This document shows positions 836 through 62,996 of a DNA stretch of 64,000 nucleotides, one piece after another. The position numbers were made by a program, and so were the translations under genes. Under the pieces are notes generated by a model that saw only the letters and a list, made by a program, of their open reading frames with translations, made no database searches and was not told where the DNA came from. The stretch comes from Mytilus californianus (taxonomy: Eukaryota), in NCBI RefSeq assembly GCF_021869535.1, contig NW_026262581.1, positions 12,710,001-12,774,000 of the forward strand, read 5' to 3'. Position 1 is the first letter of the stretch. Every line of letters begins with the position of its first letter.

Positions 836-1033
836 CTGAAGAGTGGAGATTGTAAACACTTGTTCATCTTTGACCTCTGGAAAAATCTTTTTTAATTTGG
901 TCAAGGTTAATGACTTGATCTCCCTCTGCTCTTGTGGAGGAACCACGTCCCATTTATTGCAGACGAATAAAGTTGCACGTGAATCAAAGATGTCATCTGA
1001 TGAGTTAACAACTGAACGTAAAAAATCTGAAAG
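836..1033 (-). CDS. Gene A exon 5 (G4 NKWD)
   Basis: Not in ORF track on this strand. ttcag|LSDFLRSVVNSSDDIFDSRATLFVCNKWDVVPP...TISTLQ|gtcgta; 198 nt. Confidence 0.9.
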
Positions 1034-3475
1034 CTGAAATAAGTAAATTGATCCATATGAGAGTTTGCATGTGTAAAGAAAGTGGTAGTAAAAATATGGA
1101 AGTTAAAGTTGCAAGTTTATATTTATTCATTCAATGCCAAATTATATTAAAAACTAATTTTATAAACTAAATGAACTGCCAATGTCAAATTAATTCGGAT
1201 ACGAGTCCTTCTTGTTTTAAACTTTTTTCTCCCTCTTCCTTTTTTGTGGGGATATCGAAACTCTTAATTTTCATGTATTAATCGTGATCTTACTAATCTT
1301 ACATACTCTTCCTCTCTGTAATCCTGCAGCTTGAGCAGAATCTATGATGTAAATAAATCCAAATGACTCTTTCATGTATTCCTGAAGCCTTTTAATGATC
1401 AATCTGTTTTCTCCAATTCCTGGGGTGTCAACTAATACTATTCCATTCTGCAATAGTTTAAAGCAAAATAGAAAGTTTAGTTAAAATAAGATTATATAAA
1501 AAAGAAGATGTGGTATGATTGCCAATGAGACAACTCTCCACAAGAGACCAAATGACACAGAAATTAACAACTATAGGTCACCGTAAAGCTATTCTCCATT
1601 ACCTTTTACTTGATGTATTCTCTTGTGCAATTTTTGGGGGTTTTGACTTCTGTTTTTCACTTTTGTTACCCTTTTCCCTTTTACTTATAAGATAAAGTCA
1701 ACAAGATCCCACATCCAAAATTACAAAATACTTTACCTTTTTTATCGAAGTGGTTTATTTTTCCGTTATTACTTATTACTACAGATCACCAATACCATTT
1801 ATTTTTATATTTTACCTTTATAATTTCGGAAGGCCAGAAAATTTCGATTTTCTCAAACGGACTTTCATCATCCTCATTTAATTCTTGAATGTGATATTTT
1901 AGTTTCTTAAAGTCATTTTTTTCATCTTCGCCAAGGTCTAGACGACGGATTCCTTTTTCATCCTTGTTGTATAAAATCGCCTCTTTTTCATTATTTCTAC
2001 TGTGCCGTATCTCACAAATTGTAGCAGTGCATGCCAGCTGTTGAGTCGGTAGTAAATCTTTCCTCAAAATAAGATTAACGAAACTACTTTTCCCCGCTAC
2101 TCTATCACCTGTTTCAAGAAAAACATACAGCTTCTGTTCAAAATATTGATTATATAAACCCCCTTCAAAGATTTAATGACAAAAAATGAGTTATGTTTTT
2201 CAGAAGAAAAAGTTATCTATGATGGGTTTTTATTTTACTTGGGTCTTCAGTCTTATCTATTGCTGATTTACTATTTATTACATATTATATCAATCTTACT
2301 GGATAAAAAAAACAAAACACAAATATAAAGAAGTCACTTTCTTATACAAATTATTAAAGCCAAAATAATTATGTTGCACTTCATGAATGAAACATTTTCT
2401 TATTTCAAATTCACTACGCATTGTGATGTAATGTGCCATGTATATGTATTTAATAATTATAACAGTCCAATTGAAAAATAAAAGTCAAGAACTAGATGTA
2501 CCTAAAAGAAGATTGCACTGTAAGTGCTACAATACAAATATTGGTATATATTTTACTATACATGGATTAAGTTGAAACAGCAGTACTACCGGTGCAAACA
2601 TTGACACAACTCATTTTAACATGCACTACAAAATAGTGCAAGAGTTGTAACCTTGGTTACCTGCGATCAATATAAAGCAATCTTGGGAGAGTATGTCTCT
2701 CTGTCTGTATTCCAGTTCTTCTGTGAAATTTTGGAAAACACTATTTATATCTTTCTGTAATATATCATTCAGCTTGTCATAGAACGATTTCACTTCGACA
2801 TACTTCTGAAGTAATAATTCTCTTGTTTCTTTGTTGTTTACTACAACTTCGTCAAGGTTTGGAGGTTTCTGAATTATATTAATTATTTCAGTATTATTAG
2901 ATTGTTAATATCGTGCAATGCCAACTTTTGGATAGTATAAGACCAAATACCTTGGTATGTGAATTACGAGAATAAGAAAACCTTCAATTTTTTTCACTTT
3001 TTAAAATAAAGATACTTAAATGATATCTAAATTGAGGAGCATTAAAATCAACTATTGCAAAAAGTGGTGTCAAATAAAAAGGATATATAACTGTCAATCT
3101 AGAAATTGAAGTGTGTATCATAAATGAACACAGTTAACCGAGACATTTCAACCTGAGTCAATCATGAAATTGATCCTTAATATATAGGCCTTTGTACGTT
3201 TTAGCTTTTCTGTGTCGCTACTAGTTGATAAAGTGCAGTGCAATATCTATTCTATTGGATATAATGAATACCTAAATCTGATGTCTTACCTTTCCTTCAC
3301 CGGAAGTTGTATGTTTCTTATCCCATTCATTTAACAAAACTTTAATAATCTGATCCTTTGTTCTAAGGCCTTTGGAGATAAGTCCCCATGATTTGACAAA
3401 TCTAAAACCTGTAGGTACATCTGGAATACCGATTATATCGTCTCGACATTTAATTTCAAATCCTTTAGACGACAT
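836..3475 (-). CDS. Gene A (partial, 3' part off window): N-terminal helical module + dynamin-like (BDLP/mitofusin-type) GTPase; divergent paralogue of B and C
   Basis: Five GT-AG exons read by hand: 3290-3475, 2661-2868, 1816-2108, 1307-1447, 836-1033 (342 aa in window). Motifs GDRVAGKSS (G1), LPTQQLACT (G2), DTPG (G3), NKWD (G4). Intron phases match B and C; exons 1, 2 and 5 have identical sizes (186, 208, 198 nt). Confidence 0.9.
1307..1447 (-). CDS. Gene A exon 4 (G3 DTPG)
   Basis: ttgcag|NGIVLVDTPGIGEN...GLQRGR|gtatgt. Confidence 0.92.
1816..2108 (-). CDS. Gene A exon 3 (P-loop and G2)
   Basis: aacag|(G)DRVAGKSSFVNLILRKDLLPTQQLACTATICEIR...FWPSEIIK|gtaaaa. Confidence 0.92.
2661..2868 (-). 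CDS. Gene A exon 2 (helical segment before P-loop)
   Basis: Not in ORF track. ttcag|KPPNLDEV...QDCFILIA G|gtaacc; 208 nt as in B and C. Confidence 0.88.
3290..3475 (-). CDS. Gene A exon 1 (62-aa N-terminal module)
   Basis: MSSKGFEIKCRDDIIGIPDV...SGEGK then donor gtaaga, phase 0; 44/62 identical to gene B exon 1. Confidence 0.88.
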
Positions 3476-5058: not shown

Positions 5059-5142
5059 TTACACCCCAGTTCTATTGTTATACTTCACAGTTTCTATTTC
5101 TTACACCCCAGTTCTATTGTTATACTTCATAGTTTCTATTTC
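5059..5142. repeat. 42-bp tandem duplication
   Basis: ttacaccccagttctattgttatacttca(c/t)agtttctatttc twice, 1 mismatch. Confidence 0.9.
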
Positions 5143-5166
5143 TGAAACAAGTGTAAATTGAATAGA

Positions 5167-6407: not shown

Positions 6408-6413
6408 CACTTA

Positions 6414-8808: not shown

Positions 8809-8855
<47 letters not shown>

Positions 8856-13046: not shown

Positions 13047-13454
13047 CTAATGAAGCAAAAATTGTTCAAAAAATGTTTTAACATCTGTAGAATCTGGTCT
13101 ATGATCTTTATCCTTTGACCAGCATGATTTTAACAAATTTTGCCATTTTTCGTCTGGTTTGTGTTTCAGTGTTAATGAAGGCCGCAGTCCTTTATTTATC
13201 ACTGCTTCATCAAGAGTAGTATATAGCTGTTGTTGTATATGATCTGCGACATCGAGTCCATACCACATCTCCCAGAGCAATATTCCTAGTGCATAAATAT
13301 CTGCCTTTCTGTCATAAATTCCTGTCGGAACAAGTACTTCCGGTGCCATATAAACAGGGGAGCCAGTATTGGTTCCACTAATGTCCCTTTCCTTCTTCGT
13401 AAGTCCTACATCGCTTAGTTTGACTACATCCTGTCCGTTTTTATTCTTCACAAT
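13047..13454 (-). CDS. Gene B exon 10 (kinase C-lobe, stop)
   Basis: ttgcag|IVKNKNGQDVVKLSDVGLTK...GSPVYMAPE...FLLH TAG. Confidence 0.94.
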   Translation of the reverse strand: MVKNKNGQDVVKLSDVGLTKKERDISGTNTGSPVYMAPEVLVPTGIYDRKADIYALGILLWEMWYGLDVADHIQQQLYTTLDEAVINKGLRPSLTLKHKPDEKWQNLLKSCWSKDKDHRPDSTDVKTFFEQFLLH

Positions 13455-16400
13455 CTGCAATAAAAACAGAATTTCACATGATTATAAAATGTCAGTTGAT
13501 TACATGCAATGTATTCATTGGGAAAAATCTACAATTTCATGTTCAACAAAAAAAGGGAAGGAGATACAAAAGATGCTATCGAACACCATCAATATAAAAA
13601 GAAATAAAACAAACAACATCTCTACCGAAAGAAAGATAAGTACAAAGACAAGCAACAGATAACTATAACACTACATAGGAAATTTAGATTAAGGTGGCTG
13701 GGGCGTCTTAATTAAAATTGATAGAATTTTTTAATAAATTGTCAAAATGAAGTTTTTATCATGCTTTTTTCAAAAATATAATAAAAAGTATGGATCACCG
13801 GACTTTTTTTCACGCTACAGGTTGTGCAAAATTGTCAGATTTTGTATAGATTATGCATGGAAAATCAAATTTGGTGTGATAAAAAGAAAACTACATGATA
13901 GAATTTTAAGATATAATGTGAGAAGATAGCTCTTTTAACATGCTTTCATATAAGAGAAAGAAAAAATGGGGTCACCGAACTTGTTTTCTTGCTACAGATT
14001 AAAATAGGTAAATTCATAACACTTTCTATTATAAAAATTACTTTATCTGAGTTATTTCCCCTTTTTTGGCAAAGTTGAAAAAAAATTAATCAAACACAAA
14101 TAAGGTGTTTTTGAGAAATTACAGCCGTAATTAATATAAAACACTCAATTTTCTATATTTACACCAAAAGTCTAACACAAGAATTATATACTATTAAAAT
14201 TTGCACATTTCATCAAAGATCTAGACCAATGTTATCTGCTACTTCAAAATCCAAGATGAAGGAAGACACCCGAGCCACCTTAAGCAACACAAACCCTATC
14301 AAAATATATGGGGTGAATTCCAATGTTTTAAGGTGATAATAGTTCCCGCTGAAATAGTGAAATTCGTCGTGTTTCTGCTGTTAAACTTTGTTGATAATAC
14401 AGATGCGATTGTAAGGCGTCACGCGATAGCGCATTATGTTTTACAAATATAGGTTAAATAAAACATACTGCTAGACCTAATACAAAAGTTTGAAACGAAA
14501 AAAGTATTTCTTGACATTGGTCAGATGCAACACAGAAAACGTCGACGAAAAGCACTACCAACTCCTTTTAAAAATCTCGGGGTGAACAGTTCTTGCTCAA
14601 CTTATGACATCCTATGCTACGAAAAATATTGGGAAGTGTATTCTACAAAGTTTGATACTATGTTTGCCCTAGGACTTTTATTAAGATTGACAATTGTGAA
14701 GACATTTTGTAGACAGAGGTTCATTCGTAAAAAACAGTTGACAAAGTTTTAATCGGACAATAATGATGGCAAAAATACAAATAAAGAATTTGAGTTTCAA
14801 GTAAATTAATTTGAAGTTGACGCCATTCTATTGTGTAATGTTAGTTGGGATGTCATAAAAAGTAAAATAACAAAAATACCAAGGAAAATTCAAAACGGAA
14901 AGTTCTTTATCAAATGGCAAAATCAAAAGCTCAAACACATCAAACGAAAGGAAAACAACTGTCATATTCCTGACTTGGTACAGGCATTTCCTTATGTAGA
15001 AAATGGTGGATTAAACCTGGTTTTACAGCTAGCTAAACATCCCACTTGTATGACAGTCGCATAAAATTCCATTATATTGACAACAATGTGTGAACAAAAA
15101 AAAAAATGTCTTACAAGATGAAATCAACATGTTATAAATTCCATGTGTCCGAAGCGCTTTTCTTAATTTACCTCTATCAGGAACGCTCAAAGCCGAATAT
15201 TTGAAAGCCAAGGATGTATAAGAATCGAAACAGTTGAAGAGCTATATGACCAAAAAGGACCTAAAAATAGCCAAATCCATCTAAGGTCAACTTTGCCTGT
15301 TGGAGTTAAAACTTTACTTTCTTTATAATTTCAAAATGTATCAATGGACAACTTTAGAATGGTTTGTTTTTAATCATGTCATTAACAACGTCAACATATT
15401 TGTTCTAAAATTACCAAATAAACATCTTTGTATTGGACTCATTTAAAAAAAATAAAGGACAAAATTAAAATAAAAAGAGATACATTCTGCTGTTTTGCAT
15501 TTAATGAGTCACAAAGAAAAAATATAAGACAAAGTTAAAAAATGACAATACTGATAATTGACAAGCCATCTTCTTTTGAACATCTGAGTATTACTATTCA
15601 ATAGATTTGTGATACTTCGTTTATTTCAAAATTTAACTGCCCAAAAATGGGATTGATCATTTTTTCTCCTTTCAGTATACTGTAACATAATGTGGTGTAG
15701 AAATGACTATAACTTCAGTGTGCAAATTCATCCGGTACACTAGAGAATTGTACTTTTGAAAGCAAATTCATTTAACATCTTGTAAGATCAAACAAAAAAG
15801 TTCATAAACGACAGCTTTTAAAAAAGCGTTAATAGTTTGTCAAAGTAAGGCGACGGTAGTTTACCAATGTTCAAATTTCACAAATCGATTAAGAAGAGAC
15901 AAATCAAGGAAACAAACACACTGAGGGAATCGCATACATTGAACTTGTAAAAGGTGTTTGCAAACTAAGTTTTATTTAAAGACATACTCAATTTATACAC
16001 AGAAAACGTATTTTGCTGTCAAACCCTTTTTGGTGAAACTTTATTCATGAAGATCGTTTAAGAATCACAATATCGTAAGATTTGACATATACTTTTAGTT
16101 TACAATAAAAGTGACATTAACCGAAGGAATCCTACATCAAACTGATATAATTATGATGTGATCATGGAAGATAACACAAATCAAATGATAATAATTATCA
16201 ATACCAAGAACATTACTTATTAGACTTAAGTCTTTTAAATTTCGTTAAGGTTTAAGAAGATTTGATATGGCCAAAATTATTTATATTTTTATTAGCTCAC
16301 CAAAATATTTTCTAATTTCATATCACGATGAACCATTTTCTTTCTGTGTAGATATTCCAATCCTTCGCATATCTGAATGGCATATCTTGCAAGCTCCTCC

Positions 16401-19400
16401 ATTTGTTCTACTTGTGCAGAATATATTTCAACTTTACCAGGATTGTCGTAGTCTGGGCTGAGGAACTTATTTTTCAAAGTATCATCACAGTATTCCATTA
16501 TCATAATAAAGTGTACCATTCTTTTAGTTTCACCGCTCTGTTGTAATATGCAACCATAGTATTGTATGATATTTGGATGTTTTGTTTCCCTAAAATAAAT
16601 ATGTAAATCTTTAAAAGAAGGGTAGAAAATGTGCTCGGCTAAACATATTGGCATTTGTTAGTCTACACTTTTTAAAGAATCACAAAACACCGAAATTAAT
16701 TTTATTTATGAAATGCACATTTTAAAACTTAATATCTCGTCAGTTTTGCTCATATAATAAGATATTAGGAATTCGAAAATATAAAACTAAAGTGATGTAA
16801 AATCAAATAGGTCGTCGAAATACTGAGCGTCGATAGAATAACACTACAATTTCACAAATTCAAGGTTTTTTTTCAGCTGAAAATTTCTCGATCATAGTAA
16901 TATGAGGCAACAGTAGTTACTTATGTTCAAAACTCTTTTATCCATTTAGAATATACAAACTAAAAGGAAAACTTAAGGAATCGCAGGAACTCCAAACAGA
17001 GCGATACCGTCTCCGTCAATAGAATAAGCGTCTTCTGCTATTTATGCAGCACTATCCGAATTTCACAGTAAGGAATAAGACACAATTTTTAAATATCAGG
17101 TCATACGACTATTCTGGTGAATAAAATTGTACAGGATGAAAAGGTTTCTCTCAAATGGTTAACCTTTTACAAACAGAACTTTGTATTATTTGAATTGAAA
17201 CAATATGTTTGAAGACTCATTTGGCAAATCAAAAAAAAAAAAAACAAAAACCATAAAAAAAAAGACAAGCCAGAACATATTAGAAAAAAATGTAATGAGA
17301 ACAGAGACACAGTACAAAACTAGAAGTCGAATGTATTAAAAATAGCATAGCGAAAACGACAAAAAAATAAGTTTGAATCCCATGCAAAACCGGGACAGGC
17401 TGAGGTGTTTTAATTTGTACTTAACCAGAGGTGCCAGTCATATGGCTAATAACAAGTTGAAATCCTGTGACGAATTACATTTGGTAACAATTCATTATCG
17501 AGGAAAAGAAGAAACGATAGGGGCTTTGATAAATGGAAAACATTTCCACCACTGACATACACTTTCTGTTACTCTTAACCAAATCAGAATGGGGTTCGTA
17601 AAACTTTCAAAATTATCACTTGAGCTTTTTCGACAATAACCCTTGGTTTTTAAGCTTCATGTTTAGCTGCAAACGACCAACATAGAAATATGGAGAAAAA
17701 TACAAGATCGAAAATATTAGCGTTGTATCATTTTGAGATAGGTAGGCACTGGTGGAATACTGCTACACAAAAACAAAAATTTCTCAATAAGAAAAGTGAA
17801 GCCACCTCTTTTGGAGTAAATCTAACTTCTTAATCGATTCTCGCTGGAGATGACCACCAACGCGAATCAAATACAGTAAACAATAAATTGCAAGTAAATG
17901 CAAAATCGAAATAAAAAAAATTAAAAAGGACACAATATGTATACTTTTAAGCAACACTGATAAGTAAATCTTTGACTATACAAATATTTTCTTGTCATGT
18001 TGCCGATCAAGAATACCTTAACGTTCTATCTTCCAATAAAATGTCCGATACGACCCTTTCTGACAGTGGATCTTTACAATACTTCAGTGCAACGATTTCA
18101 GTATGGCTGGATAGTTTAAGATGACCTTTGTAAACGTCTGCAAAACTTCCACTTCCTAAAAGATCTTTTCTGTTCCATTCAACGTCACTTAATCTGTAGT
18201 CCATATCCATGATATGATATACGAAAAACAAGTCCAATTCACCTTGAATAGTCTGACCTGAGGAAATAAACTGTGGATACATTGTATGCAAATTATCATC
18301 TGCTTTTCTTACACTGTGTGTCAGTTTTTCTAATAGCTGGCTATCTGCTTTTAGAAATTCAGGTATTTTCTTGGCAATCTCATCCACGCCTTTCACCAGT
18401 TTCCTAAGATAGTGCGAAATTTTATCTTGTAAATCGTTTCCATGAACAATTGACTCAATAAACAGATCTGTTGCTTCTGCCATTTTCCTTGTACTATTTT
18501 CTTTTTTGTAACTTTTAAATTTTTCTCTAAATTGTTTGTTGCTTGCTATTGCTGCACTCGCGACTGCTACAGCTCCGCCTAAGCCTTTTATGTCATCTAT
18601 ATCATCTCTTTTTGCTTTTCGCCATATGTTTTTGACAGGTGCTTGCTTCTTTATTGATTTGTAAAGGTCCTTTATCATTTTTTTATCGTGTTCTCCAAGA
18701 AGTGTACCTTTAAAAGAGAAAAATAATAAAACAGCAATACAAATGTCGTTTCTTTAAGTAATATGCTATGAAAATTAGTTTTTTTAAGTAAACTGTATTA
18801 ACCTATCATGACTATTTGTGAAGTTATTTCCCATAAATATGTAGTCACAAAATGAATTAAACATTATTTTACTAAAAACAGTGAAATACACGGTAAATTA
18901 TAGAATTTTAATTACTCAACCAATATTTACTTAAAGTGACATGTTGTTCACATCCTGATCCTTTTGCGGTCTCCATGGCAATCAAACCAAATTGCTTTAT
19001 TTCTATAATGACCTCCATGAAATCTTCAGAATTAAAAGAAGTTGAAGTTACCCACATACGCAAATAACAGCAACCCAAAAACAATAAAAAAAAAAAGGAA
19101 TATCCAATTTTTCTTGACACAAATACATGTGGGGCATTGCTTTGCTTATAGATTTATGTAATAGTTTTATTACTGTTTTCAAACATCTTGGTATTTATTT
19201 TAGAGATGTTGATAATATGTCGTCTTCAATTAATCCTCATTTTACAAATACTCGTTTATGACTCAGTTAAATAAAGACTGATAACCCAGATCATCAATCT
19301 TTTGAGATTGTGGTGATTTCATTGTTCTAATTTTCCAACTTTTTCTCTTTTCCTACCTGTCAGACAATCTTTTGTCAAACGAATTATGAATGGGTAGTCT

Positions 19401-50118: not shown

Positions 50119-50523
50119 CTAATGTCGCAAAAATTTTTCAAAAAATATTTTTATATCTGTAGCTTCGGGTCTCTGAGTTTGATCTTTTGCCCAGCAAGCT
50201 TTTATCAAATTTTGCCAGTTTTCGTCTGGTTTATATTTCAGTGATAATGATGGTCGCAGTCCTTCGTCCACTACCGCCTTTTCCAGGGAGGTATACAGTT
50301 GTTGTTGTATATGGTCTGCTGCGTCGATGCCATACCACATCTCCCACAGCATTATTCCGAGTGCATAAATATCGGCTCTTCTGTCATAAATTCCTTTCGG
50401 AACAAGTACTTCCGGTGCCATATACACAGGTGAACCTAGAATTGATCCACCAATATGATCTTCCCTCTTTGTTAACCCTACATCTGTAAGTTTGACTACG
50501 TCATGTCCATCTTTTCTCACCGT
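50119..50523 (-). CDS. Gene C exon 10 (kinase C-lobe, stop)
   Basis: ttgcag|TVRKDGHDVVKLTDVGLTK...GSPVYMAPE...FLRH TAG. Confidence 0.94.
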   Translation of the reverse strand, partial: TVRKDGHDVVKLTDVGLTKREDHIGGSILGSPVYMAPEVLVPKGIYDRRADIYALGIMLWEMWYGIDAADHIQQQLYTSLEKAVVDEGLRPSLSLKYKPDENWQNLIKACWAKDQTQRPEATDIKIFFEKFLRH

Positions 50524-53500
50524 CTGCAAGGAAAAAAAGTAAAGTAAAGTCAGTAAATGCATATTTGATTGTATTGACAATTTGATACAAAGTATACATT
50601 AATAACTTTTATATACGATAATCCCGGGCTTGTATTTTCTATCATGATTTTCTTGATAACAGGTTGCTTCTCACAAGGAAGCTATTAAACCATGAGTTCC
50701 AAGTGGTGAAATTGAAATCGTCCCTTCGTAACTTTTACGGACGCCATCACGAGTTGGTTGACCGTTATGGAATATCCGTTTCACAGATGACCACGGATAT
50801 GTTCCAATTGTCGTAACTACAATCCTTTTCCCTTTTCCTCGAATGTGACCTATCGAATTAGACTTATCACCGGGTTTGTACTTACATGAGCAACACGACG
50901 GGTGTCACACGTGGAGCAGGATCTGCTTACCTTTCTGGAGCACCTGAGATCACCCCCAGTATTTGGTGTGGTTCGTATTGCTCAGTCATTAGTTTTCTAT
51001 GTTTTGTTTTGTGTAGTGTTGTTTGTTTGTCTTTTTCTTTTTATCCATGGCGTTGTCAGTTTATTTTCGACTTGTGAGTTTGAATGTCCCTTTGGTATCC
51101 TTCGCCTCTCTTTTAGAATATCTATGTTCCATATTTTGAAAAATGTGTAATACTAATTTTCCACTATTTACTTCACTTAACATTATTTACTAGCCGGAAA
51201 ATTCACAACAGGTGATAGTGTTACATTTTGGTAAATCTTGATACTATTTGGCGATTGTTGTATCAGTCACAACATTGCCACCACTTATAGGAAAATAAGA
51301 AGACCCCACGGAAAAAGGCGAATAAACAAATCCCTTGAGTCAAAGAATTGAGAGCCACCATTACAATGACGAAACAACTAACATGAGACCACAAAACATT
51401 GCACAGAAAAATAAATATTGTCCAGCATGACCTCAACTAAAACTGGGGATAAAATCAGATACTCTGAATGATTATTGGTTCTTGCTTCACTAGCGCATAT
51501 AATCGAAAAAATAAATTACATCATTTGAGTAGCTTTTTTGAGAGAAATCATCCCCCCTCAAACTCATTCAAAGAAATTCTGATTGGAAACACATACTTTG
51601 GAAAATTGTTGCAATATTTTATAAAGATATATTTTTAAAGCGCGGTTAGAATTATGCTGTAAAAATGAATAAGTTAACAAGTTAAATTTGATAAATACAA
51701 TCAAAAGTCAAAAGTGTTTTATTTATTCAGTGAAAAGAATATCATCTATATAGGGGGACGTAAAAGTGTGCTAACATTTTTCAATTCTTACTGTAAAAAA
51801 AACTCAAGATTGCCTTATGCAATTAAACTACCTAGTCAACTGAAAGAAGGAAAACCTTGAATTTGCAAAATTACTTCCTTTGTAACTGAATATTTACTAT
51901 CAAAACTTTCAGTGAAATCATATAATTACCCAAGAACAGATTTCTTAGTAGACAGTTTAACTCCATATACAGACAATCAATAAAAATATGAATGTAGTAG
52001 TAGTTATAAGCATCAACTTCTAATAAACACTGTACATATGTTTTAATGATATTATTAAGCATTACGAACGCACACATAAAAAAGATCGATAATGAACTGT
52101 GCTTCGTTTAGATTGCTCTTATATTAAAATTGTCAGTATTTTATAGATTTTAATAAATTTACCAAAATGTTTTCTAATTTCATATCACGATGAACCATTT
52201 TCTTCTTGTGGAGAAACTCCAATCCTCCACATATCTGGACAGCATATCTTGCAAGCTCTTCCATTTGCTCTATCTGTACAGAGTATATTTCAACTTTACC
52301 AGGGTTTTCGTACTCTGAGCTAATGAATTTATTTTTCAGGGTGTCATCGCAGTATTCCATTATCATAATCCAGTGAACCATTCTCCTGGTTTTACCACTC
52401 TGTTGCAATGTGCATCCATGATATTGTATAATATTTGGATGCTGCAGTTCCCTGAAATAAAAATGTGTACATCTGTAACATTTTGTTCTTTTGTCAATCG
52501 CCGTTTCCCGCCTTTTCCGATTAAATGTATCATTCGGCATATCGTTCTCTAACACAATGTTGCTGAAATATTGGCCACGGGACTTTAAAACCCAATAAGC
52601 AATCAATCAAATTGAAACAAACAACAAAGTGGATAATATTTCAATTATTGTAGCGACGCTTCAGTTATCAAAAAGATTATTTTACTCGTCAGAAGCGCGA
52701 TACTTCCTCTAATATACTTTAAAATTCCACTATATATGACTGAAATTGACAGCAAAAACATATTTACATTACAACAACACTGAACTGTATAGATGTGACA
52801 AATCAAACCAATATTATTTTGATATCGGCTAAGAAAAAAATACCTCAATGTTCTATCTTCTAATAAAATGTCCGATATAACCTTTTCCGACAATGGATCT
52901 TTGCAATACTTCAGTGCAACTTTTTCATTCTGGTTAGGTAGTTTAAGTTGACCTTTGAAAACGTCTGCAAAACTTCCACTTCCTAAAAGATCATCTCTGT
53001 CCCATTCAACGTCACTTAATCTGTAATCCATGTCCATGATGTAATATACATAAAACAAATCCAGTTCTCCTTGAATTGTGTGACCTGAGGAAATAAATTG
53101 TGGATACATCTTCCTCATCTTGTCGTCTGTATCTCTTACACTGTGTGTAATTTTTTCAAGAAGCTGACTATCTGCTTTGAGAAATTCTGGTATTTTCTTG
53201 GCAATTTCATCCACACCTTTTACCAATTTGCCCAGATAGTTTGAAATTTTGTCTTGTAATTCATTTCCCTGAAAAATTGACTCAATAAACATGACTGTTG
53301 CCTCTGCCATTTTCTTTGTATTATTATCTTTCTTGTAAGCTTTGAATATTTCTCTAAATTTTTTGTTACTGGCTATAACTGAACCAACAGCTCCTACCGC
53401 TCCTCCTAAGCCTCTTACGTCATCATCAACACCATCTCGCTTTGCTTTTCTCCATAGGGCTTTTACTGGTGCTTGCTTCTTCATTGATTTGTGGAGGTCG

Positions 53501-56500
53501 TTTATTATCTTTTTATCCTGTTCTCCGAGAAGAGTACCTTTTAATGAACGAAAATATGTTCTTGAATTCGTGATATATTCAATGAATAGAAAAAAAATTT
53601 TAATCAATTTAAATCATCTGTTGTATCAAATTGTAAAATGTTCTTTTTGCTAAATTTGAAATCTAAAAATTAAAATTAAAAAAAAATCTAAAATTTATGC
53701 AAATACGGTGAAAATAAATTCGTCTTTGCGTGTTTTCTAACATGCTTGTATGGTTATATGATAATTAAGAGTACATGTCAAATAAAACCATAAACACATA
53801 TTCTGCAGTTAATGGGAACCCAAACATAATGGAGACACAAATCGGAGATCTATGATCTTTTATAGAAGTGAAGATCCCAATTTGCATATTTTTAACATCA
53901 TTTGCTGTGGGTTTTTATTTAATCATACTGTTATCATCGTAAAATATAAAAACCAGACCTGTCCTTTTCACAAAAAGGAAAAATGTATTATCTGCCATTT
54001 TATAAAATGTCCGCTTACAGAAATTTTCAAATTAGTTAATTTTCAAAAATACAAATAATGATTATGAAAGAATTTACCTTCTATTGTTATGATTTGGTCC
54101 TCTAGTAGTTCACAATCTCGTTTAAATTTCTTTATCATCTTCTCTTTTAGTGAGTGGATAATTCGTTGTTCCTTTTCCCATCTATTTAACTCTACTGCAA
54201 CTTTACTTGCAATTCTTTCGGCTGCTTCCTTTGCCAACTTCTTAGAATCATCAGGAGGTGGACATTCAACCTGGTTCCAGTCAGTCAATGTGCTGAGCAT
54301 GTTCCGTGACCTTAACACGTCAGCTGTTGTTTTGTGCAAATCTGTTATCTCATACTGTAGTCCTTTTCTCAGATCATCAATTGTATGTCTTGATTTCGCC
54401 TCTAAGGCGTCCATATTACGTTTGATTCCGTCCATCTTTTTGGTCATTTCTTCTTTGTCTACAGCGTCTAATGTTTTAGATACTTTCAGTGAGTAATTAG
54501 CTCTTTTTAGAATCTGTGACAACCACCTATTATTGAAAATAAAATTTCATAATAATCACTATCAGTCTCGAGAAAGTTACGATAGAACAACTGGGTCGTA
54601 AGGATGGAGATCAGCACGTCCTCATTAATTGTATATGTGTTAGTTCATGGACACAGTCTTAAGTAACGAACTTAGTTGTAGAAGGGGATTTATATTTCGA
54701 TCCTTTCTAAAATATAATCAAAACTTCTAGCTCGTTGACAACGTTAAGGTTTCTTGCAGTAATATAGTTACACGAATATATATCACAGTCTCACGAACTA
54801 CGGGTGTATTTTCAATAGTTGGACTATAGCTTTTATCAAACTAATTGCAATTATCAAGTATATTGACGGTTGTAATGTTCAAACATGGTTGCCTCAATTC
54901 ATTGATTTTACTGAATTACTTATCTTACACCTAAAAAACGACTATCATCTATTGCTGCTTAAGTTGGTAATGAAAACGCCATCCTAGATATGCGCCCGTT
55001 TTGCAGTGAAGTCTCGGATTTCAATTTTAACACTAGTAATTAAAAGAAAAAAGATTTACTGTGGAAGAATTCGGATTAATAGACTTATTTTTTCATAGGA
55101 ATTGCTCTTCCGAGATCATTCTCAGTTTTTGATTGGGTTCGTGATGCTCAGTCTATAGTTTTCTATGTTGTGTTTCGTAGACTGTTGCTTGTATTTTCGT
55201 CGTTTTTGTTGTTTTGTTTGCAATGGCGTTGTCAGTTTGTATGTGACTTAGAATATCCCTTTTGTATATTCCGCCTTTCTTATATTGATAAAAGTTATAA
55301 TTGTACTGTTGTTCAATCACTGTTACAGTGTTCATATTCATTTCATAGTGACTAACATGTTCTCGTCCTGAAATGTATGTTAGATTTTTCACTGGATGTT
55401 AAACATCAGTCAAATCAACCATCACAGATCAGGAACCTCTTCAGTAGTTGTAGTACGTCATATCTTAATGTTCTTCGTTATCTGGAGAGTTGGTGTTGAT
55501 GGCTGATCATTATTGATTGTCTCTTTTAATTTTAATCAACTTTTAAAGACTCGGGACGAAATTGTTTTGACACCTGTCTATTGTTCAAGAATGTATGGTA
55601 ATTTTTCCTTTGGCCTTCGAGTGAGTTAACTTCTGCTAATTTTAGAGGAGTGCATAAACTGAATGAAATTTTAGTTATTTCACTTTCCAATCCAAGTTTT
55701 ACATTTGACATGTGTCATAGCCCATCAATGTTACAAATCATATATAGCCGTGCCTTACTAATTTACATTTTTAATTCACTCAAAGCTACGCTTTTCGTTA
55801 ATTAAATAAGTTTATTCGTAAAACGCGTGCTATATATATATATATATATCTTGTATAGATATCGTTTGATTATTTTTGTTATTGGGTTGCTTTTTTATTA
55901 ACGAGTAACCAACATCTCCTTTTATTCAATTGAAGATGTGAATATGTAGGATATACATGAATGAGACACATTACATGTCTCCTTAATTAGTTTGTGTATA
56001 GTTATTTTGTTTCTCCACTTTCTCATTTTGGCATGCTTTGTTATTGAATAATTTGTTTATACTTATAATTACCGATAATGCGAATTGAGCTGTTGACGTA
56101 AACTAGCTGGAAACAATCGCTGCAGTCCATTGGATATAAAATCTTCATGACCAGAATTTATGGTTCCGAATTCTATTGCACGTTTGGCCTAAATATAAGA
56201 AACACCATATTGATAACACCGACCAAAAACGAGTAAAGGACTACATTTTCTACAAGTACATATACACTGTAGAAACTGAATTTGAATTTTGAGCATCTGT
56301 AAACATTTTGTAGTATACCTTCTTTTTTTCCAACAATCCGCAATCAGGAAGTCGTTATCCAGAAGATTTAAGATTGAATGCATTGTAGAACTTAATATGA
56401 TCGAGCTTCTGATCAAAATAGCCATACGGAAGTTCTGAAAATCAGACATACGGTGCGAGTAAACATTATCTATTTCAAGCCAAAATGTGTAATCTCTTCT

Positions 56501-59500
56501 TTTGATACAAGTTAAAACAAACTTCGTCAAAAAGTTTTATGTTCGACTGAAATAGTAAAACTTCTATCATTGGCAAGCTGTAATAGCAGTAACGATACCA
56601 ATTGTACTGCACCAGGTGCGCATTTCGACAAAACAATGTCAAATCAGTGATGCTTGAGGCTGAAATACTTGAAAACCCAAATTTATAGCGTGTACATGTC
56701 AGAACTGCATGGATTTCATCTATCAATTTCTAAACCAAATATTAAATCAGCCCATTTAAAAAAGGAAAGAAAAATATACCAAAAATGTCTAATTTAGTGG
56801 GTACAGTTAAAATAAAACCCTTTGCCAACAAATACGTGACATCACGACAAAACATAAATTCGCATACACGAACTATAGCTAAACATCATTAAGCTCAAAA
56901 CAACTGATATGACTGGTGTAACTATTCTTTTTAAATTAAACCCAAGAAAACCTTTGCAAAAACTTTATGTTCATTGGATAGTTATATATCACGTTAGTAT
57001 CAGCATCAAATAGATGCATTGTTTATCTGAAAATCGATTAATTGGTTCAACTGAGAATTGAGTTGAACTTGAGGCGAAAGGACGAATGGACAGACTAATG
57101 CAGTATACCGCCACTCTAAAAGTGAATCTGTAATTAAAATTGTCGGAGAAAATCTTCATATTAAATACAAAAATCCTTAATAAGTTTTATAATTAAAGTT
57201 TACTATAAAAATTTTATGTTGACCTCAAATTTCTTGTATTGATATTAATTCTCTGAGATATTACCTCTGTGGTTGAAAAGTAATATATTTGCTCTTGTCG
57301 AAGTCCCTGAAATATTTGTTCCAATCGGTACACAATTCCCCGCTTTATTTCTTCCCTGTCCTTAGGTGGTACGACATCCCATTTATTGCAAATGAATAAA
57401 GTGGACGACGGACTGAAATCTTCTTCTGAAGAGTTGACTATATTTCTTAGAAAATCTTTCAACTAAAATATACAAAGTATTGATAATTACAAATTATGTC
57501 AGCACTACGGCAGATACAACAGGATATGTGTTGCGGGTTGCCATTCAAAACAATTGATTTTGCAATGCATCAGATTTTTTCTACCGTTCCTTTTGACATT
57601 TCAATACGATGGATTTTGCAAAATGTACGAAAGATTTTGATATGTTTAACCCATTGCATCTGCAGTACCGATAGTCGATAACAGGGTGAAAAGTATAATC
57701 GACAAATTTTCAGTTTTACAAAACTGTATAGCTGCTTCACATATCTTCAACGTTTCCTAGGGAAATGCTTTGCTTCCTTTAAGATTACACCATTTCTATA
57801 ACTGGTGTCTAAGTTTGTAGGCTGTTTTTTTCTAATTTACCAGTAAGATATCATAAATTTGTCATGAATATTGTAACATCAAATGAGACTTATATTTAAA
57901 AATAACTTCCTTCTTAATTTATTAAGAGTTTGTCAGCATACATCAAGTCTCATTGTACTATTTTGTCAAACTGGCACTTGTACTATAGTCTTAGGCTAGA
58001 ACTGTACTAAACTCTGATTTATTAATTTGATCAAGTTAACACAATTTATTCTTGAATACAATTGTCATTCTTTTTATTATTCTGATAATATACTGTTATA
58101 AACATATCTTTTGATACGGTTTTGTACTTTTCCTACTTATGTGGGTTTTTTTAAAACTATTACAGTTACTTTAGAGTAGATGGCTTTTCTTGTTCTGATC
58201 TTTAATCTATAGGTATACACTTTTAATGTACATGTTTTATTCCACTGATCGAAATTAATAAAGGGAAACATAAAGGTATAAGAAACAAGAAAAAATAAAA
58301 CTAACCCCCGCAATATGTCAATTTACATGACTATTGTCCTAAGTAAAAAACTCTTAGTTTTTATCTGAAGTTTTTGTCATTTGGGAAACTTGGTTTTGAT
58401 GACAGATTTTTGAAAGTTTCTCGTATATATTCACAAATTCTTTTAGACTCGATGCGTTTAGTGCTCGATATCTTGTGAAGACAGCTGTCTTTTGTTGAAG
58501 ACCTTATGCTTACATGTAGATATCTTATTTTTTCTTTCTTTTGTGTATTTTTTTCATTAGCGCACACCCAATATCTCCTTTTATTCATTGAAGAAACCAT
58601 GTGAATGTATAAAACCTGATAGGTACATTACAAATAAGTTTTATGGTTCAAAAATTTTAAATTTCATGCGTCCAAAGAGAGGTGAAATTCAATCAGAAAC
58701 ACTTCTAGGACATTAATGAGTTATCAACCATTTCTTACCCGTCCTCTCTGAACACCGCCTGCATTAGCAGTATTCACAACATAAATAAATCCACACGATT
58801 TTGAGAGGTACTTTTTAAGTGATTTGTGTATCTGGTTGTCACCGAATCCAGGAGTATCTATTATCACCAGACCTTCCTGGAAAAAACCCAGTAAATTGGA
58901 AATTTTGTATCATTACTTATTACAATATACTTGTACATTCAACATATTATACAGTAAAAAAAAATTGTAAACGGCATTATGAAATATTTCATCTGATCAT
59001 CCATGACCTTTACAATAAACCCACATGTTCTCTTTTTCCTAAAACGGCAACGCTTTTAAACATTGCCATTTAAATTTAAATAATAAAATCCAATTGCGTA
59101 ACAAGACTTAAATTGCTAATAAGAAAACAAATTACATAGCCGCATAAAGGCCGGTTCAATGCAAACATTTTAATATCATGTAGTCATAAATCACATCTAG
59201 TAATAAAATCATCGTAAAAGTGGGTTAATATACTCATATCTTTTGCAATCACAAGTCAATAAGAGAGTTTCTTTTTAGTAGAAAAGTCAGCTGCAACTTC
59301 AGGTTTACGCATCTTACAACTGTGGACAAGATATCCAGTAAAACCTATTTGTTAAATTGAAATTAGAAACCAAATCAATTGGCAGAAAATTTGAAGACAT
59401 TATTTTTTTAAAGAGATACCTCTGAAATAAAGAAAATATACCTCGACTTGATCCTTGATACACTCAGCAAAAGTTAAAATTCGGCACAGTTGCCGTTTGA

Positions 59501-62500
59501 TACGTTTGAAGTATCTCTCATAATTAATTGAAAAATTAAACTGTTATATAAGAAGCAAAACTTGAGTGAATAAAAGATTGAAAAAAAAACGTGTATCTTG
59601 ATAAGCACGAAATTTTATTTGAAATAGTGTATATTTTTACAATTTCATATATCCCATTACAACATACCTCAATTATATCAGTCGGCCAATATATTTCAAT
59701 TTTATCGTACGGATTGTCACCATAATCGTCTTCATATACTATTTCTCTTCTTAACCTTTCTTGTCCTTCCTTGGTACTTAGATCTATCTCTGATCTCTGT
59801 CCGCCATTAGACCCAAAGCAGATTGCCTTCTTTCGACCATCTTTGCTCTTCCGTATTTCACAGACTGTTTGTGTGCATTTAATACCACTTGTAGGAAGAA
59901 TGTCGGCTTCCAGCAATAAGTTTATAAGACTACTTTTTCCTGATGTTGCCTCTCCTAGAAAAAGATGACTTAGAGCTCATTGTTGTGCAAAAATATATTG
60001 AGGTTTTGAAACTTTTAGTGATGCTCAAGCTGAAGAAATCAATATAACAATTACTTCAATGTATTATCATAACATGCATAAGAAAAAAAGAACATCATTT
60101 GATGCACATGCCTGGCGCATAATTCTCGTGTACTTCAAAAAAAAAAGGAAAATTCATCAAAGACCAAGCGCTTTCATTACTGATTACAACTCACAGCAAG
60201 ACATGTAACCAAGGTCAAAAGCCCATGCGTCAACTAAAATGATACCTTTTGATATTATAATCGAAATCCACTTCATACGTTATCAAAGAAATGCTTGCAA
60301 GAGTAACCAATGAATTGCACTGATGGGGTTTTCACCACTTATTTCATTTTTGAATGAAGTTTAATATCAGAAAAATCTTAAAAAGAGACTCAATGTCCAT
60401 GATGGACACTGGTTTTATTTTGTAAATAATATCTAGTAGCAAATTTGACTTGCAGTAATGCATGGCTATGCTTTTGTAGAAGCTGTACATATTGTTAGTT
60501 TAGTTGAAAATGTTGTACAATATGCCATTAATGTTCGTCGTCTGTATTCATGTATTACCGAACTATTCTGCTCGAAATGCATTGTGTCAGGGGCAAAGTG
60601 TTGTTTATTTAGCTTAATTTAAAACAAAAGAACATGCATTTATATTATTATATACCTGCAACAAGAATGTTACATTCAGGTGATGACAATTCGGATCGCT
60701 TCAAATGAGCAGTCTTTTCAATGTCTGGAAAGATATTATTCAAATCTTGTTGGAAGTTGACAGGTAGTTCTTTATAAAAGTTCACGACTTTGTCATACAG
60801 TTTCATTAATTTCTCTCTATTTCCTCTGTGATATTGCAATGCTTCTTGTAAAACTGTTCCTCCCTGAAAAGTTTTTAAAAATATGCATAAAAATAAGTAA
60901 GTTATATATATAATGTCCAACCTTTTTTAAGGAAATAATTGGTAACACAGTCTTCTTCGTGTGATTATTTTGTGCAATGGTAAAGATTATTGTTCATTCG
61001 ATTATTTAATTTCAAATAGATGAGAGCTAATTTTAAAAGTGTAAATTGCGGAAATTAAAGTCAGCTTGTTCGTTTTACAATACATATACAATACAATAGC
61101 GAAAACATCACTCAATCTGCTATTTTACAGAAAATTTTGTTTTTGTTTAAAACCAATATGATTTGTTGAATGTGCAAACGGTTCAAAAATTTTCGAGATG
61201 ATATTTACATCGAAGAACCTGCACGCAGCAAAATAAAACTACAAGTTGTGCAAATGCACCTGTTACATGATTCATTGTTGGTTGCTTAACGTCCAGTGGC
61301 AAATATTTCATGCATTTTTAGGACGACACATGTTACATGTGCAGTGGTTATTAATTTTTTTACAATAAGCTTCCGTGCTATAAGTTGCGGCGAAAAATTA
61401 TTGTCCGTAATGTTCAGGCGATTCTCAGTGATACTTTTATACCAGATGTAGGTTGTGTAACGAGACAACCGTGCACTGACCTGTATACCTGTATCAAGTC
61501 ACTAGAATTTTAGACCACTACTGACCAGTATACATGTACTAAGTCAGTAGAACAAAAAACAACTATTGTCCAGAATGCATGTACAATGCCAGTCGGACAA
61601 CAGACAACAATATTTCTACAAGGTCAGTAGAACTAAAGCCATCTAACGATTAATATATCTGTATAAGTTCAGTATAACTAAAGACATCCACTGACCAATA
61701 TGTATGTACAAGGTCAGTGGAACTAAAGTAATATCTGACCAGTATACTTGTACCAAGTCAGTAGAACTAAAGACAGCATGCATACATGCACAAGAATCAA
61801 ACATGATGTAAAATATATGTTTTTTTTTCAGTGCATAATGAATTCTCAAGTTATCTTCTATGTTATACTCACACTTTGCTTATGTATGTATATAGAATGC
61901 ATGAAAATAAAAATACGAATAGATAAAAAAAAAGATGAATACTAAAGTGCAAGGTCATGAAAAAAGTCAAAAACGAAAAGATCATTGGCAAAAAAGAGAC
62001 AGCACGAAAAAATGAAGTGAATAGGAATTATATGTCCTTACTCTCATTATTTCACCTCTATCTAAATTACGGAATAAAATTGGTATACGTTTGGCTGAAA
62101 TTTAGAAACGTCATATAGAAATCAATATCTCAAAGTATATAAGTAAAAAAAGTATTCATGCTTAATCAAATGAAGCATAGCTTAATTAAAATTCACACGT
62201 TGATGCTTCAGAATAATTTTCAATGATCAGCAGAGTGTCTGACTTAAATTTTAATTTATTAAGATCGATGAACTGTCACTTTTTGAGTACAATTAGTCTG
62301 GGACTTCCCCCAACAATTTGAATATAATTCTGAAATCTGCTACCTTTAAACACATTAGTAACGATAAAAAGGCGAAATAGTCTCAATGTTCCGAATGACT
62401 GATTCTTTAGAAAACGGTTAAAACATTGACTAGTATCGTGTTGCAGTGATTGTAATTTGTCATGTCATGTGAGTTATTCGCCTACAGAGATATAAAAAAA

Positions 62501-62996
62501 ACATAGTGTGGATACATAATTTATCATTTTAAACCTATCACTATATAAATAGTCTTCTCGTTCCCATCAGTATAAATATACCGACAGAAGCAAGCATGAT
62601 TCAAATATATTCTTATTTTTAAACACACCAAAAACAGACCGAATTATCGAAAAGTTTGCTAGAATTTAGGTTTCTATCTTAGGTGCATCACTGTCATATT
62701 CTTTTTATTGCATTTTCAAACCAATAAAAACAAACAATTTAACACACGCATTCATAAGACTAATGAATTTGTATACATAAAGGTCGAAATCAGTTAAAAT
62801 AAAATCTTACCGTTTTTCTATCTTTGGGTGCAACAGCTCCATTTTCTTTATAAAATTTGACTAGTTCTGATACGAAAATATCTTTATTTGCAGTTTTTGG
62901 TGCTTTTATTCCCCACTGTTTAAAAAGTTTCATCATGGACGATATATCTTTCAGTTGTAAAATGTCTTCTACATTGTTGATTTGTATTTCTGCCAT
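50119..62996 (-). CDS. Gene C: complete 10-exon, 989-aa N-terminal module + dynamin-like GTPase + helical stalk + protein kinase fusion
   Basis: Exons 62811-62996, 60656-60863, 59668-59954, 58739-58876, 57265-57462, 56073-56188, 54078-54526, 52844-53537, 52163-52451, 50119-50523. Total 2970 nt, in frame, all introns GT-AG; same motifs as B. Confidence 0.93.
50614..51114 (+). mobile_element. Penelope-like 3' fragment in gene C intron 9 (shorter related pieces near 49480-49830 and 55095-55280)
   Basis: Aligns with 7530-8035 and 35300-35781, ending ttcgcctctctttt. Confidence 0.88.
52163..52451 (-). CDS. Gene C exon 9 (kinase)
   Basis: ttcag|(R)ELQHPNIIQYHGC...HRDMKLENIL|gtaaat; 289 nt. Confidence 0.94.
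52844..53537 (-). CDS. Gene C exon 8 (stalk + kinase N-lobe start)
   Basis: aaaag|(G)TLLGEQDKK...LLGSGSFADVFKG...VALKYC...LLEDRTL(R)|gtattt; 694 nt. Confidence 0.94.
54078..54526 (-). CDS. Gene C exon 7 (helical stalk)
   Basis: aatag|WLSQILKRANYSLK...QIITIE G|gtaaat; 449 nt. Confidence 0.93.
56073..56188 (-). CDS. Gene C exon 6
   Basis: Not in ORF track. tttag|AKRAIEFGTINSGHEDFISNGLQRLFPASLRQQLNSHY(R)|gtaatt; 116 nt. Confidence 0.92.
57265..57462 (-). CDS. Gene C exon 5 (G4)
   Basis: tttag|LKDFLRNIVN...TLFICNKWDVVP...YFSTTE|gtaata. Confidence 0.93.
58739..58876 (-). CDS. Gene C exon 4 (G3)
   Basis: Not in ORF track. tccag|EGLVIIDTPGFGDNQIHKSLKKYLSKSCGFIYVVNTANAGGVQRGR|gtaaga. Confidence 0.93.
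59668..59954 (-). CDS. Gene C exon 3 (P-loop, G2)
   Basis: tctag|(G)EATSGKSSLINLLL...YWPTDIIE|gtatgt; 287 nt. Confidence 0.95.
60656..60863 (-). CDS. Gene C exon 2
   Basis: ttcag|GGTVLQEALQYHRGN...PECNILVA G|gtatat; 55/69 identical to B. Confidence 0.92.
61472..61790. repeat. ~45-bp minisatellite with internally palindromic unit, gene C intron 1
   Basis: About 7 diverged copies of ccactgaccagtatacatgtacaaggtcagtagaactaaagac (ctgacc...ggtcag dyad). Confidence 0.8.
62811..62996 (-). CDS. Gene C exon 1 (62-aa N-terminal module, divergent type)
   Basis: CAAGATGG start, MAEIQINNVEDILQLKDISSMMKLFKQWGIK...KDRKT|gtaaga, phase 0; same 186-nt size as exon 1 of A and B. Confidence 0.82.

Follow-up and report, generated by a model that had tools for sequence, protein, structure and literature searches.

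What is encoded by a cluster of Mytilus californianus genes in which a dynamin-like GTPase and a protein kinase appear to be joined in one product, and what might such a fusion do in an animal cell? The cluster lies in a stretch of 64,000 nucleotides (nt) of assembly GCF_021869535.1 (contig NW_026262581.1, positions 12,710,001 to 12,774,000 of the forward strand), referred to here as the window, and the three genes visible in it are called A, B and C. A preliminary description, made from the sequence alone, had proposed tandem, intact genes in which a GTPase of the bacterial-dynamin/mitofusin kind is connected by a long helical stalk to a kinase, and had regarded them as a candidate uncharacterised animal immune or membrane-remodelling system. 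The locus is an array of at least five genes, each encoding a GTPase-kinase fusion of about 990 amino acids (aa), and one of them, gene C, is transcribed.

Genes, transcripts and selection

Genes B and C are complete. Splice sites were set by hand from reading-frame segments; all junctions in both genes are GT-AG, and the spliced products of 989 aa show the domain and motif order that had been proposed for them (Table 1). The exon lengths of the two genes are equal, except for one codon each in exons 8 and 10, and the proteins are 75% identical. Every piece of open reading frame (ORF) size with similarity to Dynamin_N or Pkinase lies on the minus strand of the window. The outer coordinates of the cluster, 836 and 62996, are the end of gene A exon 5 and the ATG of gene C.

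Gene A enters the window with five of its ten exons, the remainder lying past the window start; all ten are visible at a wider locus, L001 (GCA_021869535.1, JAKFGE010000001.1:12691385-12723475; subtracting an L001 position from 13476 gives the position in the window). The G1-G4 motifs of gene A are intact, and 337-339 of its residues align with B and C at 36-45% identity, in keeping with its earlier placement as a more distant third copy. Its 342 aa are 100% identical to residues 1-342 of P0152, a M. californianus RefSeq protein of 990 aa bearing the database name ‘tyrosine-protein kinase Fer-like isoform X1’. The public annotation also holds a 989-residue Dynamin_N and Pkinase product whose end coincides with that of gene B. 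Downstream of gene A, beyond the window start (L001:25845-32091), a model of 2000 residues is annotated with the domain series Dynamin_N, Pkinase, Dynamin_N, Pkinase; it probably represents two further copies merged in one annotation. Since these add to A, B and C, the head-to-tail array has at least five members and is longer than first seen.

Transcription was followed by mapping one stranded RNA-seq run and contigs from three further studies onto positions 52100-57500 of gene C. RNA depth in this range is confined to exons 5-9, and the RNA is joined exactly at four introns (52451|52844, 53537|54078, 54526|56073 and 56188|57265), so that the hand-set junctions are matched there base for base. 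Loose RNA ends read into exon 4 (at 57463) and into the start of exon 10 (at 52163). A single 1735-nt contig spans exons 5-9 and connects the NKWD exon with the HRD exon; GTPase, stalk and kinase are therefore carried on one mRNA. Additionally, eight runs returned by a run search contain 21-33% of the sampled words of a 9.8-kb stretch of which exons form 26%, as expected of a spliced transcript.

Two further observations concern the RNA of gene C. In intron 6, a 40-nt stretch (55135-55175) reaches a summed contig depth of 510 and 1548 in two RNA runs, compared with 24-130 on exons; this depth stems from several short contigs whose remaining sequence is unrelated, and the stretch is probably a repeat expressed elsewhere. 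At six exonic sites (54319, 54343, 54418, 54492, 56105 and 56135), a base other than that of the assembly was found in all four runs, each from a different study. These look like alleles of the assembled individual rather than RNA editing.

The codon alignment of B and C gives a rate of non-synonymous substitution (dN) of 0.147 and of synonymous substitution (dS) of 0.722, with a dN/dS ratio (omega) of about 0.2. By region, omega is lowest in the GTPase (0.10), with 0.17 for the kinase and 0.19-0.20 for the stalk; purifying selection acts on every domain. The first 47 codons of exon 3, including the split Gly codon, encode the same protein sequence in both genes and differ at 16 synonymous and no non-synonymous positions, as had been counted before; the codon that follows them specifies E in B and G in C. 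Together with the spliced transcripts of C, the dN/dS ratio bears out the view that the genes are not pseudogenes. Exon 2 (60656-60863 in C, 37984-38191 in B) stands apart, with a dS of 0.23, compared with 0.64-0.90 in other domains, and an omega of 0.45. Its low dS may be a trace of local gene conversion, or of the crossover, described below, by which exon 1 was exchanged.

Table 1. Genes and exons of the array in the window, with the neighbouring first exon (window coordinates)
Feature	Position	Strand	Content
Gene C	50119..62996	-	complete, 10 exons, 989 aa, coding sequence 2970 nt
C exon 1	62811..62996	-	62-aa N-terminal module, three helices, SAP-like
C exon 2	60656..60863	-	HB1 N-terminal helices (‘neck’), through first base of P-loop Gly codon
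C exon 3	59668..59954	-	G1 GEATSGKS (59954-59932 + base 60656), G2 (59898-59872)
C exon 4	58739..58876	-	G3, DTPG at 58858-58847
C exon 5	57265..57462	-	G4, NKWD at 57387-57376
C exon 6	56073..56188	-	G domain end, stalk start
C exon 7	54078..54526	-	outward stalk helices; long helix 362-459 in model
C exon 8	52844..53537	-	stalk tip loop GLGGAV... 53412-53395, returning stalk helix, kinase beta1-beta3; GSGSFA 52983-52966, VALK 52920-52909
C exon 9	52163..52451	-	kinase alphaC to catalytic loop; HRDMKLEN 52192-52169; Pfam Pkinase 2.8e-15
C exon 10	50119..50523	-	DVG 50484-50476, APE 50418-50410, C-lobe, stop codon; Pfam Pkinase 8e-16
Gene B	13047..41075	-	complete, 10 exons, 989 aa, coding sequence 2970 nt
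B exon 1	40890..41075	-	A-type N-module
B exon 2	37984..38191	-
B exon 3	28343..28629	-	G1 and G2; Pfam Dynamin_N 5e-11, 43 bits
B exon 4	26121..26258	-	DTPG at 26240-26229
B exon 5	25365..25562	-	NKWD at 25487-25476
B exon 6	24583..24698	-
B exon 7	19503..19951	-
B exon 8	18017..18707	-	tip loop 18585-18568, Gly-loop, VALK
B exon 9	16301..16589	-	HRD at 16330-16307
B exon 10	13047..13454	-	DVG, APE, stop codon
Gene A	836..3475	-	exons 1-5 in window: 3475-3290, 2868-2661, 2108-1816, 1447-1307, 1033-836
Neighbour, first exon	63426..63635	+	divergently transcribed, same N-module; hhalign against N-module profile A2: probability 95.9%, E 6e-9, 45 columns

The introns of gene B are long and full of transposon remains. 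In its intron 2 and between A and B, such remains were noted on the plus strand at 30413-32590, 34832-35422 and 7061-7735, with ORFs that weakly match a tyrosine recombinase of phage-integrase type (SAM-like N-domain), the thumb and RNase H regions of reverse transcriptase (RT), and RVT_1. The set at 30413-32590 resembles a DIRS-type retroelement, and two RT fragments are about 80% alike. Intron 6 of B contains, just downstream of exon 6 on the minus strand (24343-24486), a partial extra copy of exon 4, comprising about 22 codons around DTPG inside an open frame of 48 codons.

The GTPase, its stalk and the attached domains

In the C protein, the GTPase motifs are G1 GEATSGKS at aa 132-139, G2 LPTSGIKCT at 151-159, DTPG at 234-237 and NKWD at 299-302; those of the kinase are GSGSFA at 713-718, VALK at 734-737, HRDMKLEN at 846-853, DVG at 869-871 and APE at 891-893. 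Gene B carries the same set. Pfam matches to Dynamin_N and Pkinase on single exons are above or near threshold. In full-length relatives, Dynamin_N reaches 60-89 bits (cut-off 27), and Pkinase reaches 139-171 bits in five typical proteins and 111 bits in P0160, a longer form from Ostrea edulis.

The kind of GTPase was examined by searching a profile made from 41 N-terminal parts of family members against PDB sequences. BDLP, a bacterial dynamin-like protein (DLP), was matched at an E-value of 1.4e-24, followed by MFN2 (1e-14), MFN1 (6e-14), Campylobacter DLP (3e-12), IniA (4.5e-10) and OPA1 (0.08); IRG sequences were matched by the same profile at 3e-5 to 1e-3. In addition, residues 1-722 of the scallop relative P0142, which is 47% identical to C, were folded with the family alignment (predicted local distance difference test, pLDDT, 80). 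A Foldseek search with this model placed BDLP first (E 1.5e-15 over 715 columns), and then Fzo1, SynDLP, Campylobacter DLP, MFN1/2 and IniA. VIA-align gave the highest Z to mini-MFN1 (29.5; 352 residues, root-mean-square deviation, rmsd, 4.3), with Fzo1 at 28, MFN2 at 27 and BDLP at 20.9, compared with at most 18.6 for dynamin, Drp1 and Mx (Mx structures 15-19). The ESM Atlas shape search aligned full-length mitofusin 1b over model residues 73-715, with template-modelling (TM) scores of 0.54/0.53. Both the profile and the modelled fold thus confirm the N-terminal 700 aa as a mitofusin/BDLP-type dynamin-like protein, as had been proposed from the motif pattern, and not a classical dynamin. Assignment to the classical dynamin, Mx or GBP type was rejected on its weaker scores.

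In the P0142 model, both helical bundle 1 (HB1) and the second bundle (trunk/HB2) are recovered, with an aligned range of 74-705 on mini-MFN1. The region of exon 2 corresponds to helices 67-126 of the model and is aligned with HB1 of mini-MFN1. Because the aligned range includes the last helix before the kinase, this helix would belong to HB1 as well, and the kinase is therefore predicted to hang from HB1 beside the G domain rather than from the far end of the stalk. The PADLOC models of LeoA and LeoBC also align over the G domain and stalk of relatives.

The stalk tip differs among branches of the family. In coral, nemertean, hemichordate and amphioxus members, it is a hairpin of 27-36 uncharged residues with a central Pro/Gly. 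In the lophotrochozoan clade that holds A, B and C, it comprises 8-18 uncharged Gly/Ala/Ser-rich residues (15 in B and C), and the B/C loop lies within a stretch with 17 K/R and 8 D/E residues. An annotated isoform X2 of gene A (P0156, compared with P0152) is without residues 533-707; the missing stretch is internal to exon 8 and corresponds to the tip loop and most of the returning stalk helices, and GTPase and kinase stay in frame.

The kinase follows directly on the last stalk (HB1) helix, so that the modelled stalk joins the GTPase to a kinase with all catalytic residues, in line with the earlier proposal. B and C both contain the Gly-rich loop, VALK, HRDMKLEN with its catalytic-loop Asn, DVG and APE, and their alphaC Glu was identified by visual inspection. 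DVG replaces DFG in most family members, mollusc and coral alike. No close solved relative was found; PKR, NEK7, ULK1, GCN2, STE20-type kinases, Fes, TAK1 and LRRK1 score alike. By sequence, the domain may be placed among Ser/Thr-type kinases, as ‘TKL-like/other’ only (TKL, tyrosine kinase-like). A strong kinase match to PADLOC ‘mad6’ was taken as a generic Hanks-kinase match and set aside as defence evidence. An ESM Atlas search with C exon 8 alone returned short kinase fragments only and was uninformative.

The 62-aa module encoded by exon 1 is conserved family-wide and is modelled as three helices (pLDDT 75). The top rows of its Foldseek search are SAP-fold domains, all at E of about 1 or weaker, and include the CDNF/MANF C-terminal domain (TM 0.75 by target, rmsd 1.7), FAN1, SIZ1, PIAS1 and 3'hExo; a Pfam scan gave no SAP match for the module. 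Exon 1 of B is identical to that of A at 44 of 62 aa and 153 of 186 nt, compared with 20% aa identity to C, whereas over exons 2-5 the closer match to B is C (82% identity, compared with 39% to A). This pattern suggests that the N-module was exchanged by exon shuffling or unequal crossing-over; a quick blastn comparison of the 600 nt preceding each of the two start codons, those of A and B, detected no flank in common. The gene next to C, which is transcribed divergently from it, encodes the same module in its first exon; the rest of that gene lies past the window end. Two N-module-like exons were also seen at L001 25848-25955 and 28953-29117. Among relatives, extra upstream domains occur in P0031 from Biomphalaria (SCAN, 2.5e-7) and in P0160 (DZIP3-type HEPN, 1e-25). 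Swapped among paralogues and common to the neighbour gene, the N-module is probably an adaptor.

The architecture is widespread in animals. An exhaustive HMMER search with C exon 8, which covers the stalk and first kinase strands, found 127 proteins among 1.84 billion representatives, many of them full-length proteins of 900-1100 aa. Members occur, often in several copies, in stony corals, Trichoplax, hemichordates, amphioxus, bivalves, gastropods, cephalopods, Lingula, a nemertean and the flatworm Macrostomum. Collinear relatives of the same architecture are present in at least eight animal phyla, and C aligns with them end to end at 28-47% identity. Both Dynamin_N and Pkinase were found in all full-length relatives checked. 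The G1-G4 and kinase motifs are kept in the aligned relatives (74 fetched), the exceptions being isoform models that are truncated or lack exons, and a small number of divergent sequences. The next matches after the animal family are bacterial dynamin family proteins. Locus tags suggest further tandem arrays in Oculina, Acropora, Potamilus, Sinanodonta and Trichoplax.

In a quick IQ-TREE analysis of 68 full-length proteins, B, C and the transcript-derived P0385 (79% identical to C) form a clade with support of 100, within which C is sister to P0385 (support 98). The split between B and C is therefore not very recent, which agrees with the dS of 0.72. Proteins of M. galloprovincialis and M. trossulus form a group with gene A (support 100), and the A and B/C lineages are among several pteriomorph paralogue lineages whose branching order the tree does not settle. 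The hairpin-bearing clades (coral, deuterostome, and nemertean plus oyster) lie outside the mollusc-Lingula clade.

The family is already present in public databases with both Pfam domains listed. In the literature searched, no paper on an animal Dynamin_N and Pkinase family or on this architecture was found, and an eLife survey of metazoan and bacterial immune domains does not mention dynamin (PMC8195603). The epithet ‘uncharacterised’ used at first thus holds for the literature searched, but not for the databases.

Possible mechanism and competing explanations

BDLP and mitofusins undergo G-domain dimerisation upon GTP binding and assemble on membranes. Trans-autophosphorylation usually requires that two kinase domains lie next to each other, and TKL kinases activated by oligomerisation are an example. 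We lean, by a modest degree, towards reading the mussel proteins as GTP-gated, membrane-associated, self-assembling kinases on a mitofusin/BDLP scaffold. GTP binding would lead to dimerisation or oligomerisation of the G domains at a membrane, as in BDLP and mitofusins; dimerisation would bring together the kinase domains hanging from HB1; and the paired kinases would trans-activate, so that kinase output would report both nucleotide and membrane state. The modelled topology, with the kinase beside the G domain, makes such a proximity switch plausible. If true, it would represent a new signalling principle, in which membrane and nucleotide state are read out as phosphorylation. No dynamin-superfamily protein with a built-in kinase was found described; the superfamily is known for membrane remodellers and immune effectors.

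Several points weigh against a membrane-associated, GTP-gated kinase. The family is known here from sequence, transcripts and models, the RNA support is restricted to exons 4-10 of gene C, and the fold model is that of a scallop relative at 47% identity, not of a mussel protein. In the mollusc clade, the tip loop is short and is disordered in the model (pLDDT below 50), which makes membrane binding of B and C uncertain. The model is silent on kinase packing, and the kinase could equally regulate the GTPase. Where an immune role is considered, the strong purifying selection carries no sign of an arms race in dN/dS and gives no positive support. Finally, kinship with DSTYK, a lead discussed below, is a comparison by features and names, not by alignment.

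As to what such a switch might serve, membrane-linked stress or innate-immune signalling and DSTYK-like endomembrane trafficking appear about equally likely, with a slight lean to the former. The tandem arrays, the lineage-specific multiplication, the varied or swapped N-modules (including HEPN) and the neighbour with the same module point towards a defence or stress role, as does the similarity that the GTPase and stalk show to LeoA/LeoBC, which belong to a bacterial anti-phage system. With their swapped N-modules, the tandem arrays would be a candidate new component of the signalling repertoires that have expanded in bivalves and corals. The reported phosphorylation of STING by DSTYK (PMC11933320) may be counted alongside. 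One weak expression lead is a haemocyte contig of M. galloprovincialis, named DSTYK/RIP5, that fell 16-fold on a second Vibrio challenge (PMC6697025) and that may or may not belong to the present family.

The strongest competitor is a housekeeping regulator of endomembrane trafficking, which would remodel or tether endolysosomal or other membranes and whose kinase would tune it in cis or phosphorylate trafficking substrates; the copy number in mussels would then reflect the duplication-prone genomes of bivalves, not defence. Such a role suits a G domain and stalk of the mitofusin/BDLP kind, an omega of 0.10-0.20 in every domain, and an old family of fixed architecture across phyla, and DSTYK, the nearest Dynamin_N-free neighbour, was reported at late endosomes (PMC11933320). 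Two further reports describe DSTYK as acting in notochord vacuole integrity and in mTORC1/TFEB signalling (PMC7012607, PMC6981171). A housekeeping role sits poorly, however, with tandem arrays, with species that hold several lineages of paralogues, and with lineage-specific multiplication among corals and among bivalves; N-terminal modules that vary or swap (SCAN, HEPN_DZIP3, A-type and C-type) are likewise unusual for core trafficking machinery. We consider it a tenable but rather doubtful explanation.

Another possibility, which we hold to be unlikely, is that the kinase is a built-in regulator, gating assembly by phosphorylation of the G domain or stalk in its own chain, and that membrane remodelling by the dynamin-like part is the output. 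Drp1 and mitofusins are regulated by phosphorylation, and the kinase directly after the last HB1 helix, near the G domain, would be suitably placed for such control. Atlastin is likewise described as regulated by phosphorylation (PMC8563291). On the other side, most of the hydrophobic hairpin is gone in the mollusc clade and the kinase is fully kept, which fits the kinase as the retained output. DSTYK, if it is a relative, would likewise have retained its kinase while losing the GTPase signatures.

It is very improbable that B and C are ordinary DSTYK orthologues, even if the DSTYK clusters are their nearest Dynamin_N-free neighbours by language-model features. The array has at least five copies and bivalves contain several old paralogue lineages; a separate mollusc ‘DSTYK-like’ cluster of 972 aa exists without a Dynamin_N match; G1-G4 motifs and Dynamin_N matches are intact across family members; and no protein named vertebrate DSTYK appeared among the named search matches. 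To an artefact (decayed pseudogenes, chance ORFs, bacterial contamination or very recent bacterial transfer) we give practically no credence: the closest non-animal G-domain relatives are indeed bacterial and the introns are full of transposon remains, but this reading is refuted by canonical spliceosomal introns between ten exons, spliced strand-specific transcripts, a dN/dS of 0.2 and the collinear relatives in at least eight animal phyla.

Comparison with known systems

Among known systems, BDLP of Nostoc punctiforme (2J68/2J69/2W6D) is the best PDB match of the sequence profile and the best Foldseek match over the whole 700 aa; other bacterial DLPs (Campylobacter DLP1/2, IniA, SynDLP, Bacillus DynA, LeoA/LeoBC) belong to the same group of closest systems. 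BDLP shows the same G1-G4 pattern, its neck and trunk are likewise built of helices that flank the G domain, and its membrane-binding element at the stalk tip may have a counterpart here. Unlike these proteins, the mussel family is animal and intron-rich, bears a C-terminal kinase and a SAP-like N-module, and does not occur as an operon pair; in the mollusc clade, the tip element is cut to 8-18 uncharged residues, unlike that of BDLP.

Mitofusins and Fzo1 give the highest structural Z and have in common with the family the layout of G domain, HB1, HB2, hydrophobic hairpin and returning helix. They are without a kinase, their sequence similarity (1e-14) is weaker than that of BDLP, and there was no Fzo_mitofusin Pfam match in the family. 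The hairpin of B and C, unlike theirs, is too short for spanning a membrane, and nothing points to mitochondria. Mx, GBP and IRG proteins are also large self-assembling GTPases; they are clearly weaker matches and do not carry a kinase.

The ROCO proteins (LRRK1/2, Roco4, DAPK1) follow a like logic, with a dimerising G domain that precedes a TKL-like kinase in the chain. When the kinase C-lobe is compared with the PDB, LRRK1 and Roco4 rank among its best matches. In contrast to ROCO proteins, the mussel proteins have a dynamin-type G domain, no COR, and no leucine-rich, ankyrin or WD40 repeats. Membership in ROCO was rejected, as Pfam scans of the exons and of full-length relatives gave no Roc/COR match. 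If the proposed mechanism is true, the family would be a second kind of GTPase-kinase beside ROCO/LRRK.

DSTYK (Dusty, ‘RIPK5’) is a kinase of vertebrates, about 930 aa long, in which the N-terminal 650 aa or so carry no annotation. It has been linked to urinary-tract malformation and spastic paraplegia. It resembles the mussel proteins in overall length and in its C-terminal kinase, and several family members are named ‘DSTYK-like’ in databases. With an amphioxus family member as ESM Atlas query, the DSTYK clusters of Chordata (927 aa), Mollusca (972 aa) and Arthropoda (993 aa) were the three nearest Dynamin_N-free neighbours (0.93, 215/256 features), compared with 0.86 and 162 for other kinases. 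The resemblance to DSTYK remarked on in the preliminary description is thereby strengthened as a lead, but simple orthology is excluded by the separate mollusc DSTYK-like cluster and the copy number here, and several old paralogue lineages speak against single-copy orthologues. The two groups differ in that the family is intact in its GTPase motifs, passes Pfam Dynamin_N and is multi-copy, while the DSTYK clusters fail Dynamin_N.

Other searches bear on DSTYK as well. DSTYK was not among the 60 nearest models of the ESM Atlas shape search; word-index protein searches (with the full-length scallop protein, the Acropora kinase region and the 41-part N-terminal profile) listed no vertebrate DSTYK; and the HMMER search with the stalk exon returned none by name, only some of its matches being named. 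In the literature searched, no link of DSTYK with dynamin or pseudoGTPases and no assigned fold for its N-terminal two thirds were found. In human DSTYK, a stretch about 120 residues from the N terminus presumably lines up with the strand, P-loop, helix and switch 1 of the family and would be without the GKS, DxxG and NKxD signatures.

Kinship with DSTYK, as a sister family with an active GTPase, is therefore a lead based on language-model features, database names and the presumed degenerate P-loop and switch 1 segment of human DSTYK. A wider and more tentative proposal, which we think possible rather than probable, is that the family represents an active, ancestral-type DSTYK. In it, GTP-dependent assembly at membranes would switch the kinase, the SAP-like N-module would act as a homotypic adaptor that recruits partners encoded next door, and the copies in mussels, oysters, corals and amphioxus would reflect immune or membrane-damage signalling, vertebrates having kept a pseudo-GTPase. 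If true, it would explain the endolysosomal and STING-related phenotypes of DSTYK. Were DSTYK a degenerate member of the family, its functions at late endosomes, in vacuoles and towards STING would gain a structural rationale, and the invertebrate proteins would be the active form.

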